Positions 53 to 64,000 of a stretch of 64,000 nucleotides of DNA are shown piece by piece; the stretch's first letter is position 1, and each line of letters begins with the position of its first letter. The stretch is from the sequence record PP886230.1. One strand, written 5' to 3'. Position numbers and translations under genes: made by a program. The notes under the pieces were generated by a model, which saw nothing but the letters and a program-made list of their open reading frames with translations, had not been told where the DNA came from and did no database searches.

Positions 53-1624
53 ATGAAATATAATCAATTACAAGAATCTATTATTAAAGTTCCTAGCTCC
101 ACTATGTCACAGATAAACAAATATGTAGCTAGTATCTTGTACTTTAAGATAAAGCAATTTATTCAACAATATGACATACAAATGGATGCTGATACTCGTA
201 ATCACCCCGCCGCAGATAAAATAAAAGCTAATGTTATTGCTGAATGTAAAAAAACACTTAATGTATTAAGTTCCAAATATGGTGCTAAAAATATTAGTTC
301 ACAATCATTTAATAACATTATTAACCAATCGGTAAAAATACCTTTTGACGCTGAACAGTATATAAAAGAATTAAATTTTAAAAAGTTAGCACCAGAAGTC
401 GTTGACGAAATCAAAAAAACGAAATTGTCTTTAGTTATAACTACTGATTCAACTGCAAAAGAACGTGGTTCTATGACTGAAGTTGCGGACAATGCATATA
501 TTATAAGAGTAAACATTAAATTACTTCCTAAAGAAGTATATTCATCTTCTATGCAATTAATGAGTACTGCATATCATGAAGCACAACATTTTGTGCAGAG
601 TTCAGTAATAAAGAAAATTAATAGTAAATCAAATCAATTACAAGTAAAGAAAAATTATGGTAAAGACCATGATGAATACTTAAGTTCTGGTATAGAATAT
701 ACACCACAATTGGGAAATGTAATTGATGCGATGGAAAATGAAGCACAATTATTAATTGATGACGATAATCTACCAGAAGATCCAAAAGAAGCATTCAACA
801 AAGTACTTCAACAAGTATTATCACGTGATGATAAGTATAATGCACGTGGATTCATTATTAGTATCTATAAAACTTCACAGAAAAAGTATAGAACAGTGAT
901 GAGTACTTTATACAAGAAGTTCATGGATGCGTTTGAAACTATTAATAAAATAAGTACTGACCATGAAGAAGGACCAGTTGAAGATTTAGGAGTTTCTATT
1001 AATGAAATGAAAACCCTAAGCGATATTGCAGAAAGATCTCGTTATTTGGAAACTAGATTGTATGGTCATTCAAGAGATGAAATTACTAAAATACATTCTC
1101 AAAGTAAAGAACATGGTTGGGAAATGATTATTACTAAGCCATCAGAAAATAGGGATTCTATTATTATTCAGATACGAAGTGAATCTGAGAATGAAAGAAA
1201 TATAATGAATTATAAACAAGCCCAAAACTTTGTAGGTTCATTAGCAAGTATGGATTTCTCAACCGATGAAGTTGTTGAATTTATGGATGAAATATTGCAT
1301 ATGGATGCCGATGATGCGAAGGCAGTAAATGGTGTTGTTAGTAAAGTTCAACAGTGGTCGGATATGGTTGGATTAAACTTTGAGAAAACCGATGAAGGTT
1401 TCAAGCTTAACAACACTGAATTTGTTGTTGAACCTTATAATGGTCGTATGGTAATATCATCTCCACAATTGAGAAATATGTATCTTGTTGGATCTGATAA
1501 AATAATAACTGATATTATGAAATATATACTTCGTTTCATGAAGGAGCAACCAGAAAAATTACTTAAAACATTGGACAGGGATGTTTCAATTGTGCAAATG
1601 AGAAGAGACTTAGGGAGTTTATAA
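53..1624 (+). CDS. Putative zincin-type metallopeptidase domain protein, probably a head/virion protein
   Basis: HExxH motif AYHEAQH followed by a downstream Glu (SSGIEY); N-terminal MKYNQLQE resembles T4-type prohead-protease LxE sites; start moved from 35 to 53 (RBS AGGAAGGA). Confidence 0.5.
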
Positions 1625-2415
1625 TGCCAAGTAAGAGTAAAAGTCAGGCTAAATTCTTCGCAGCCGCCGCACACAATCCAGAATTTGCAAAGAAAGCTGG
1701 AATTTCACAAAGTGCTGCTAAAGAATGGAATGCCGCTGATGAAAAGGAAGGAAATCTTAAAAAAAGTTCTAAACTTCCTAATAAAGTAAAAGAAGCAAGT
1801 ATGCGTAGTTTAGTCGATATTGTACAAGATGCAGAATTAGCTGATACAGACGACAGAACTTGTGATATAATGGATTCATGTGAAGACGACAAAGATAAGT
1901 TGGATGAAATGCCACAACGTTTCGATAGTTTTCAAGGTCAAGACCGAGACGAGTTTGTCGATAAAACTGCCGAAATGACAGGTAAGCACAACATGGTTAA
2001 GTTCGCAGAACATAAAGACTATGATGTATATATGAACAAAAACGGTACTGGATTTATCGCTTACGATAAGTCTGGTAAACAGCTTGCTATAGTTAGTGGG
2101 CATTTATCCAATGATGCAGTACTTGGTGTTCAAAACGTTTTTGAAATTGCCGCAACTGCATCTAAAACTGGAACTAAAGGTATAATTTATAATATTTTTA
2201 TGGATATGATATCACATGGTATTAAAGTTCTGAGTGATAGTCTGCATACTGATGATGCAATTAAATTCTGGACCCGTTTAATTGGTTCCCATCAAGTTTA
2301 TATTGTTGGTGGTGGTGAAGTACTTGCAAAGGCGAGTCCAGATAAGGTTCATAAGTACTGGAGTGATGATGAATCAAGTCCAAGTGCCGAACTTCAACTT
2401 ATGTTAGTAAAATAA
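1624..2415 (+). CDS. Hypothetical protein: conserved phage N-terminal peptide + acidic linker + GNAT-like C-terminal domain
   Basis: N-terminus [27 protein letters not shown] resembles a peptide recalled from many phage ORFs; C-terminal GTKGIIY...VLSDSLHTDDAIKFWTRL fits a GNAT-like pattern; TAA/ATG coupled to upstream gene. Confidence 0.45.
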   Translation: MPSKSKSQAKFFAAAAHNPEFAKKAGISQSAAKEWNAADEKEGNLKKSSKLPNKVKEASMRSLVDIVQDAELADTDDRTCDIMDSCEDDKDKLDEMPQRFDSFQGQDRDEFVDKTAEMTGKHNMVKFAEHKDYDVYMNKNGTGFIAYDKSGKQLAIVSGHLSNDAVLGVQNVFEIAATASKTGTKGIIYNIFMDMISHGIKVLSDSLHTDDAIKFWTRLIGSHQVYIVGGGEVLAKASPDKVHKYWSDDESSPSAELQLMLVK

Positions 2416-2419
2416 TAAT

Positions 2420-2450
2420 ATATCGGGACAAATTGTTCCGATATTTTTTT
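2420..2450 (+). terminator. Intrinsic terminator
   Basis: ATATCGGGACAA/TTGTTCCGATAT stem followed by T run. Confidence 0.75.
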
Positions 2451-2512
2451 GAGACAAACAAAACATTGGTGATACAATGTTTTATGACAAAGAGACATGA
2501 TAAGGAATTCAA

Positions 2513-63286: not shown

Positions 63287-63623
63287 AACTCAAATAGAAT
63301 TAAAGAAATTTGTTTCATTCTATTTTCCTGATGACCCACGTAATTCACAAAAAGATATTGAATATTATAATATCCTATCTAAACAGTTAATGAGAAAGTT
63401 TCAACAGTGTTTAACTATATTCAATACAGATGGAAGACGTAGATACCGAATCGTTTCAATGAATGATGAAAACGCAAATTTCTTTGATTACGATGTAGTT
63501 TTTAGAGCATATAATGATGATCGTATAAAATTAAATTATGATCAAATTATACTTGACCTGAATGTTATATGTGTTATAATCACTCACGTAGCCGAACTTA
63601 ATGGTTTTAAAGAATGGTATTGA
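63279..63623 (+). CDS. Hypothetical protein
   Basis: GAGGT RBS. Confidence 0.7.
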   Translation: MDKTQIELKKFVSFYFPDDPRNSQKDIEYYNILSKQLMRKFQQCLTIFNTDGRRRYRIVSMNDENANFFDYDVVFRAYNDDRIKLNYDQIILDLNVICVIITHVAELNGFKEWY

Positions 63624-63637
63624 ATAGAGGATAACAT

Positions 63638-63904
63638 ATGAAGCTTAAATTACAATATAATGGATTTACTTTACGTAATGATACTGAATTTATTAATCGT
63701 TCTCCTGGTGCTGAACTGTTTTTACGAGAGATGAACATTCCTTTCATCATTACTACAGTGGGCGACCGTGAAGTTCTACAATATGCAGAGCATCCGATTA
63801 TTGATGTTCCTTGGTACTCTGAGCATATGTACATGGATATGGCACGTCGCTACAACTGTAAGTTCGTAGTTGAAGGTGATAAAATTACAGTCGAATTTAA
63901 ATAA
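63638..63904 (+). CDS. Hypothetical protein
   Basis: GAGGA RBS. Confidence 0.7.
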   Translation: MKLKLQYNGFTLRNDTEFINRSPGAELFLREMNIPFIITTVGDREVLQYAEHPIIDVPWYSEHMYMDMARRYNCKFVVEGDKITVEFK

Positions 63905-63917
63905 GGTAAATTAAAAA

Positions 63918-64000
63918 TGATCAGTACTTCAGTTAATGAAAGCATCGTCGCTGACGTAGAAATGGTTAAAGAATGTGCAGATGAAACTCTTCGTGATATG
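63918..64000 (+). CDS. Partial ORF truncated by the window end
   Basis: AAGGT RBS; MISTSVNESIVADVE... open to the edge. Confidence 0.5.

Follow-up and report, generated by a model that had tools for sequence, protein, structure and literature searches.

Phages are known to purge short palindromes from their genomes, which raises the question of why one such word, AGTACT, should be so common in the DNA of Escherichia phage vB_EcoM_E9.1 (hereafter E9.1). E9.1 is a 368-kb Rak2/121Q/PBECO4-like jumbo myovirus of the genus Asteriusvirus, and the stretch analyzed here, called the window, is a 64-kb segment of its genome in which nearly every gene lies on the + strand. An earlier reading of these letters, referred to below as the sequence-only reading, had singled out AGTACT as strongly over-represented. 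The analysis described here shows that AGTACT is an inherited, selection-maintained, highly iterated palindrome of the enterobacterial Rak2-like jumbo-phage clade, and that the signal resides in the DNA itself: codon usage, dipeptides, paralogous repeats, and promoters do not account for it.

An exact count of the window gives 157 copies of AGTACT, the first at 563 and the last at 63923-63928, and the motif ranks first by count among all 4096 hexamers. The expectation is 21.5 copies for independent bases and 16.4 for an order-1 Markov model, and dinucleotide shuffles gave 15.7 (standard deviation 3.7) with a largest value of 25. The observed-to-expected ratio is therefore 7.3 to 9.6 across these nulls. 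The sequence-only reading, with its hand count of about 150 sites, its independent-base expectation of about 22, and its roughly 7-fold enrichment, is borne out, and the enrichment proves stronger than it had estimated. Among the 64 palindromic hexamers, AGTACT is the lone outlier at 9.6x, followed by GAATTC at 1.64x. The contrast with palindrome depletion in phages, which had also been drawn before, holds within the window itself: GCGC has 0 copies against 27 expected, about 25 other GC-containing six-base palindromes have zero copies, and GATC and CCGG stand at 0.54x and 0.33x. The roughly 25 absent palindromes point to classical restriction-site avoidance in the same genome. The window thus resembles other phages in avoiding GCGC and these hexamers, but AGTACT, the ScaI site, is opposite in sign as the commonest hexamer of all.

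Genes hold 139 of the sites (2.34/kb), and the other 18 are intergenic or overlap the edge of a gene (3.99/kb). The intragenic copies occur in all three frames, with 65 read as AGT-ACT, 28 as xAG-TAC-Txx, and 46 as xxA-GTA-CTx, as the sequence-only reading had claimed. An ordinary compositional artefact would attribute the excess to codon or dipeptide bias, to adaptation to phage tRNAs, or to copies of one longer repeat, and several features point that way: Ser and Thr are most often encoded by AGT and ACT in the window, the phage encodes a tRNA-Ser(GCU), and its early promoters are near-identical cassettes. The tie between this tRNA and the motif is circumstantial. Against the artefact, the enrichment stays when protein sequence and codon usage are fixed. 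A pooled synonymous shuffle predicts 33.5 intragenic sites against the 139 observed (4.2x), a within-gene synonymous shuffle predicts 40.2 with a largest value of 58 in 500 shuffles (3.5x), and the z-score of the synonymous shuffle is 18.8. The view that amino-acid bias cannot explain the excess is upheld by this 3.5- to 4.2-fold enrichment, which lies above the 2-fold limit that the sequence-only reading had set for a codon-preserving shuffle; the conditions under which that reading would have been refuted do not apply. Permutation of codon order predicts 21.5 sites in genes (6.5x). Even a dicodon-Markov null, which already holds five of the six motif bases, is exceeded by the out-of-frame classes (28 against 16.8, and 46 against 25), and the four most over-represented codon pairs of the window, CAG-TAC, GTA-CTG, AGT-ACT, and AAG-TAC, are all pieces of the motif. 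The presence of sites in three frames and in noncoding DNA, a promoter-adjacent share of only about 10%, and the conservation of synonymous positions within the motif (see below) also speak against it. A single long repeat family as the source is ruled out by flanks that are poor in information, with the most frequent 10-mer present in only 9 copies. The synonymous, codon-order, and dicodon-Markov nulls effectively refute a codon or dipeptide artefact, and we regard the artefact as a whole as almost certainly wrong.

The signal is specific for the exact hexamer. The 18 one-mismatch neighbors of AGTACT span 0.34x to 2.15x in the synonymous shuffle, and the degenerate form WGTACW, which had been considered as the signal, does not hold up: TGTACT (1.17x), AGTACA (1.36x), and TGTACA (1.41x) compare with 4.19x for AGTACT, and the signal is therefore AGTACT itself. 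Window sites show only a mild flank preference, for C at -1 and G at +1. Over the 919 sites of the near-identical phage EC22.5-2, the flanks are reverse-complement symmetric (ttC-AGTACT-Gaa), and the site in oligonucleotide form is TCAGTACTGA. Palindromic arms extend past the hexamer no more often than they do at control palindromes, so a hairpin or cruciform element was rejected.

To gauge selection on individual sites, E9.1 was compared with phage EC.P1 (84% nucleotide identity over 47 kb). In this comparison, 73.5% of AGTACT sites are intact, whereas other hexamers of matching codon phase are intact in about 43% of cases. Within the motif, third-codon positions differ in 12.1% of cases, and outside it in 29.2% (odds ratio 0.33, p=5e-9); for noncoding positions the figures are 3.2% and 11.9%, respectively. 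Substitutions are suppressed at all six positions of the motif, and lineage-specific gains and losses offset each other (29 versus 30). Relatives that lack a site most often have AGTTCT instead, with 19 cases against 3 for its complement AGAACT; AGTTCT encodes Ser-Ser where AGTACT encodes Ser-Thr, so that the gain or loss of a site often goes through a conservative replacement in the protein and not a synonymous one. A cost to protein sequence is visible in the window as well. Ser-Thr is spelled AGTACT in 65 of 116 cases where 17 are expected, and the other two frames give 46 against 11.6 and 27 against 4.6. Ser-Thr and Val-Leu are 1.5x over-represented while the reversed dipeptides Thr-Ser and Leu-Val are at 1.0x, and the motif therefore distorts protein sequence. 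Taken together, selection keeps individual AGTACT sites and their density while positions turn over.

The same density recurs across the clade, where the sequence-only reading had proposed to look. E9.1 carries 2.45 sites/kb, and the six other lineages sampled carry 2.2 (the RaK2-sized IMG/VR contig L003), 2.36 (Erwinia pEa_SNUABM_12), 2.28 (Cronobacter GAP32), 2.24 (Pectobacterium CBB), 2.06 (Salmonella SE_PL), and 3.0 (Erwinia Hallingskeid), so that every sampled enterobacterial Rak2-like lineage falls between 2.0 and 3.0. AGTACT is the top-scoring hexamer in each of them except L003, where its own flank CAGTAC alone ranks higher. Enrichment is absent from T2, Rhizobium AF3, Ralstonia RsoM2USA, and Agrobacterium Atu_ph07, and a 20-kb sample of Pseudomonas PA5oct contains 0 copies. 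Topoisomerase II identity shows a clean gap, with at least 70% within the clade and at most 44% to the next relatives. Individual positions turn over. E9.1 and pEa_SNUABM_12, from different genera, have 7 of 37 aligned sites in common, where 0.1 would be expected by chance (60% nucleotide identity, aligned genes), and in a codon alignment of four genomes with 67 site positions, 47 are private, 12 are found in two genomes, 6 in three, and 2 in four. A single 50-kb sample of Escherichia coli K-12 has 3 copies (0.06/kb), so that the phage exceeds this one stretch of host DNA about 40-fold in site density. No mention of the motif was found in the searchable literature, including that on CBB, RaK2, fEgEco12, and Sharanji.

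Along the genome, AGTACT density follows an early-to-late gradient. EC22.5-2 (352 kb) has 916-919 copies (2.6/kb), and density is 7-8/kb across the small genes of the terminal/early block, drops to 3-4/kb over the next 50 kb, and reaches 1.5-2/kb in the late/structural region; the bias is thus toward the early genes. The left 1.7 kb of E9.1 (nt 1-1700) has no open reading frame longer than 73 codons and contains 17 sites (10/kb) with the consensus TCAGTACTGAAT; judged from its sequence, this end resembles a terminal array of sites for protein binding. Elsewhere the sites are scattered. Spacing in the window is Poisson-like, with a mean of 406 bp, a median of 342 bp, and a longest gap of 1437 bp, and the dispersion index outside the early block is 0.92 on a 2-kb scale. 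No helical or longer short-range periodicity was found beyond the 3-nt codon periodicity and a small promoter-derived peak at 18-22 bp, and the regular spacing that had been proposed as a test of the signal is thus missing. Sites favor neither the starts nor the ends of genes, and the one deviation is a dip in the ribosome-binding region. Some kilobase-scale stretches are nearly devoid of the motif, with 0-2 copies per 2.5 kb flanked by DNA at 6-7/kb.

A minority of the sites occupies fixed positions in the early promoters of Asteriusvirus. The six promoters of the window that the sequence-only reading had placed (Table 1) indeed score highest among sigma70-type matches in their respective regions, with 10-12 of 12 positions matched, and each has an AGTACT. 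Promoters of the early block form a stereotyped cassette, AAAAGTACTTGCAA...AGTACTGTATAAT, in which AGTACT starts at -27 from TATAAT in 11 of 26 promoters and at -7 in 11 of 26. These slots correspond to -41 to -36 and -19 to -14 and are exactly 20 bp apart; the upstream copy overlaps the first T of the -35, and the downstream copy abuts the -10. Promoter-adjacent copies amount to about 10% of all sites in the window and about 25% in the first 50 kb, and such placement was not seen in samples of GAP32, CBB, or RaK2. The clade-wide class is therefore that of scattered, mostly intragenic sites. AGTACT as a sigma70 promoter element was rejected: its positions are fixed, but about 90% of window sites lie outside promoters. 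The three near-identical cassettes of the tRNA region, TTGACTAAATAGTTCAGTACTG..., are the first three promoters of Table 1, and their sequences suggest duplication or concerted evolution of early promoters.

Table 1. Features of the E9.1 genome referred to in the text. Coordinates are window positions unless given as genome nt.
Feature	Coordinates	Strand	Remarks
Window	genome nt 248001-312000		64 kb of Escherichia phage vB_EcoM_E9.1 (PP886230.1), 100% identity
AGTACT array	563..63928		157 sites, 2.45/kb
C5-cytosine DNA methyltransferase	26928..27788	+	286 aa; Pfam PF00145, E=4e-38
Promoter TTGACT, 16-nt spacer, TATAAT	38655..38682	+	AGTACT 38670-38675 abuts -10; 11/12 positions match
Promoter cassette	39129..39162	+	AGTACT 39129 over first T of -35 (TTGACT), AGTACT 39149 abuts -10; 20 bp apart; sigma70-type match 39134-39162
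Near-identical promoter cassette	39890..39923	+	upstream of tRNA-Ser(GCU); AGTACT 39890 at -35 edge, AGTACT 39910 at -10 edge; sigma70-type match 39895-39923
tRNA-Ser(GCU)	39930..40019	+	reads AGU, the Ser codon of in-frame AGT-ACT sites
Extended palindromic form ATTCAGTACTGAAT	41419..41438		intergenic; example
Sigma70-family sigma factor, phage-encoded	53352-54317		regions 2, 3, and 4 present
Perfect promoter TTGACA-16-TATAAT	56700..56727	+	AGTACT 56715 abuts -10; 12/12
Promoter TTGACA-17-TATTAT	57048..57076	+	AGTACT 57053 overlaps last -35 base; 11/12
Perfect promoter TTGACA-16-TATAAT	61014..61041	+	AGTACT 61029 abuts -10; 12/12
AGTACT-poor stretches	genome nt 20000-25000 and 27500-32500		
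PF05869 Dam-family N6-adenine methyltransferase	genome nt 58553-59074		

Besides the C5 DNA methyltransferase and the sigma70-family sigma factor of Table 1, the window has genes for topoisomerase II subunits, virion proteins, a clamp loader, and six tRNAs. Two further copies of the motif touch tRNA genes: one (37044-37049) lies inside the tRNA-Gly gene, directly 5' of the anticodon, and another (38113-38118) abuts the first base of tRNA-Ser(UGA).

A related word behaves differently elsewhere in E9.1. Between nt 27,500 and 35,200, the sense strand has 42 copies of AGTACA and 0 of TGTACT, an approximately 11-fold enrichment of AGTACA in a region where AGTACT is not enriched (3 copies). The AGTACA copies fall in three frames (16/12/12) and include tandem pentamer runs, AGTACAGTACAGTACA. 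The biased zone is about 30 kb long (55-85 kb of EC22.5-2), and AGTACA has the left flank ttC in common with AGTACT (CAGTACA 34 versus TGTACTG 2). The island is kept in phage ph0011 (80% identity), and its AGTACA sites never interconvert with AGTACT. Its genes form a diverged family whose PHROGs matches are only to families of unknown function. In the neighboring stretch at nt 20000-25000, about 26 small paralogs are arrayed together, with nine TGTACT copies. These lie in a conserved segment of the paralogs, and a reversed polar motif was therefore rejected there. The sequence-only reading had not noticed this strand-specific AGTACA, the clade-wide spread of AGTACT, its early-to-late gradient, or the small share of sites that belong to promoters.

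What could read or write such a word? A by-product of cytosine methylation was suggested by analogy with HIP1, the highly iterated palindrome of cyanobacteria: C5 methylation followed by very-short-patch-type repair would convert near-cognate sites to AGTACT, which would itself be functionless. The C5 methyltransferase of the window and the mild depletion of deamination-type neighbors (AGTATT 0.76x, AATACT 0.68x) fit this explanation. RaK2 DNA, however, was reported to carry CpG methylation by bisulfite analysis (data not shown; PMC3622015), and the lack of a CpG in AGTACT argues against a link to the C5 methyltransferase. Among 80 IMG/VR phage loci with homologues of the enzyme, 79 (at most 57% identity) have no AGTACT enrichment and L003 is the one exception. 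Protection covers all six positions and not C5/G2 alone, the top alternative state AGTTCT is a transversion that changes Thr to Ser, dipeptide frequencies are distorted, promoter positions are fixed with a strong early-to-late gradient, and the annotated 164 kb contain no Vsr-type nuclease. The cognate methyltransferase and the methyl-directed repair of the sequence-only reading thus find no backing, the window enzyme is probably unrelated to the motif, and the by-product explanation as a whole is very improbable. The enzyme is unusually small, and its best solved-structure matches are the catalytic domains of eukaryotic Dnmt3. ClaI, NruI, and SmaI are sensitive to CpG methylation. In contrast to RaK2, the DNA of phage fEgEco12 gave the predicted patterns with all three (PMC13070987), which suggests that it has little CpG methylation. 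Several of the IMG/VR loci with C5 methyltransferase homologues (L053, L066, L046, and L040-L045) have over-represented palindromes of their own. Examples are AGATCT (28 versus 5.7), GGATCC (16 versus 2.4, with GATC at 120 versus 59), TCCGGA (13 versus 2.4, with CCGG at 68 versus 29), and TACGTA (13-14 versus 3-4, with ACGT at about 2x), and iterated palindromes may be commoner in phages than assumed.

A Dam/GATC-type mark would instead require that the Dam-family N6-adenine methyltransferase of E9.1, or another modification enzyme, act on AGTACT, and that the fully modified, hemimodified, or unmodified state be read, whether to couple early promoters to replication, to tell strands apart, to package DNA, or to guard it from a phage nuclease. 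About 50 records contain close homologues of this PF05869 enzyme (at least 60% identity), a Klebsiella jumbo phage among them. The overlap of AGTACT with the -35 and its contact with the -10 recall GATC in Dam-regulated promoters. Yet the wider family is widespread in phages, and the members known to us act on GATC. No Pfam hits were found in the genes adjoining it, and no methylome of these phages was found in the literature. RaK2 DNA is reported to resist many restriction enzymes (PMC3622015), but the need for a mark does not by itself explain a ten-fold enrichment, and we consider this explanation unlikely. The AGTACA island bears on a strand-reading signal, in which (ttC)AGTAC is read on one strand by a polar machine and the palindrome places the signal on both strands, as would be needed where forks or motors run both ways; the AGTACA zone would have it on a single strand. 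A T4-type gp61 primase site is the most concrete candidate, and a signal for a helicase, nuclease, or translocase of the Chi or KOPS kind is another. T4 and T7 primases start on template 5'-GT, a core followed by a cryptic 3' base, and AGTACT includes 5'-GTA. The 42:0 strand bias of the island in all frames with its tandem AGTACAGTACAGTACA runs, the length of the biased zone and its retention in ph0011, and the common ttC flank favor such reading, and a long primase site would require enrichment to recur every few hundred bases. RaK2 also encodes distant homologues of gp41, gp61, gp43, and gp32 (PMC3622015). In the window, however, AGTACA reaches just 1.36x against 4.19x for AGTACT, the symmetric flanks suit a dimer equally well, and priming predicts neither the early-to-late gradient nor the fixed promoter positions. 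We know of no primase with a six-base site. The strand-reading model is unlikely, and it is kept alive by an island that a dimer leaves unexplained. Finally, AGUACU and AGUACA in sense transcripts could be processing, decay, or protein-binding sites enriched in early mRNAs, in line with the confinement of island AGTACA to the sense strand and with the high density of AGTACT in early genes. A palindromic core with flanks spanning about 10 bases is not expected of an RNA motif, though, and some sites precede the transcription starts of the promoters that contain them or occupy the genome end that is free of open reading frames. Density is also equal in the minus-strand gene blocks of GAP32 and CBB, which is uninformative for a palindrome. 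An RNA-level signal is quite improbable.

We tentatively prefer, with a probability of roughly 45%, that AGTACT is the recognition site of a putative two-fold-symmetric phage factor that marks or organizes phage DNA. The symmetric flanks are the main argument for recognition of double-stranded DNA by a two-fold-symmetric reader. The putative factor would be specific to the clade, perhaps a DNA-binding protein that acts as a dimer or a modification enzyme paired with a reader, and it would mark or organize phage DNA as distinct from host DNA. The terminal/early block, where density peaks, would, to judge from other terminally redundant phages, be the first DNA to enter the cell. In the early promoters of Asteriusvirus, occupancy of AGTACT would overlap RNA-polymerase contacts and could time early transcription. 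The genome-wide binding or self-marking signal named in the sequence-only reading is still the best-fitting class. Several points weigh against the proposed symmetric factor. The Poisson-like spacing (dispersion index 0.92) gives no hint that sites are arrayed in order, AGTACT is all but missing from some kilobase-scale stretches, and a symmetric dimer does not explain the AGTACA island, with its 42 sense copies and 0 on the other strand. The promoter role may be specific to Asteriusvirus or may reflect hitch-hiking on duplicated promoter cassettes. The contrast between phage and host rests on one 50-kb E. coli sample, and the mechanism is entirely inferential.

The parallel with HIP1 drawn in the sequence-only reading stands, and HIP1 is the closest known phenomenon, with hyper-abundance, frame independence, and site conservation in common. 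HIP1 (GCGATCGC) is the highly iterated palindrome of cyanobacteria, with an enrichment of 15-300x and a described 10-90 kb periodic distribution (Xu, Lawrence & Durand 2018, PMC5861425). Both are short perfect palindromes found in all reading frames and between genes, both are conserved between related genomes above background in a manner that points to selection and not neutral replenishment, and both are lineage-specific and of unknown function. They differ in that AGTACT has six bases and not eight, is AT-rich, is enriched 4-10x as opposed to 15-300x (PMC5861425), is carried by a virulent phage clade and not a cellular chromosome, is without a supported link to a nested methyltransferase site, and has an early-to-late gradient and fixed promoter positions.

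Other short signals offer partial likenesses. Like GATC in the Dam/SeqA/MutH system, AGTACT would be a short palindrome read on double-stranded DNA every few hundred bases; GATC too lies in the -35 or -10 of some promoters and couples them to replication state, and E9.1 encodes a Dam-family methyltransferase. GATC is, however, only slightly above chance in E. coli and depleted in the window (0.54x), and there is no evidence of AGTACT methylation and no SeqA- or MutH-like reader identified in the phage. Chi (GCTGGTGG; RecBCD) and KOPS (FtsK) are also short words over-represented genome-wide relative to foreign DNA, as AGTACT is about 40x between phage and host, and the AGTACA island has the extreme strand bias typical of polar motifs (42:0). 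AGTACT itself is palindromic and so cannot carry polarity, has no known cognate motor or nuclease, and is far denser than Chi. SPO1 TF1 and phi29 p6 are abundant phage proteins that prefer their own phage DNA, genome ends, and early promoters and that switch off early transcription, a pattern that resembles the concentration of AGTACT in the terminal/early block and its placement in promoters. TF1 recognizes hydroxymethyluracil DNA and p6 a bendability pattern. Unlike the putative AGTACT factor, neither reads a defined hexamer, and no homologue of either was identified here.

These phages form no phage nucleus, and their DNA is spread through the cytoplasm (PMC11895373). One speculative possibility, which we consider unlikely as it stands, is that AGTACT density serves as a label of self for a phage with neither modified bases nor a phage nucleus. 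A phage-encoded or virion-delivered factor would read AGTACT and so tell phage DNA from host DNA, on which the motif is 40- to 100-fold less dense; such a label could protect phage DNA against nucleases of phage or host, or guide the replication or transcription machinery to it, and the strand-specific AGTACA zone would be its polar counterpart. If true, this would be a Chi-like principle of self-recognition invented by a virus.

A palindromic restriction site as the top hexamer of a 350-kb virus is the reverse of the expected palindrome purging. Its density is conserved over at least six lineages that infect Escherichia, Salmonella, Klebsiella, Erwinia, Cronobacter, and Pectobacterium, under selection strong enough to bend protein sequences. 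AGTACT can be used as a simple metagenome signature of the clade and flags early promoters, and ScaI and RsaI digestion patterns are predicted to be diagnostic of any modification of the site. The phages offer a tractable counterpart of the unsolved HIP1 puzzle of cyanobacteria, with laboratory strains of E. coli as hosts and a small genome in which the candidate readers are a few hundred phage proteins.

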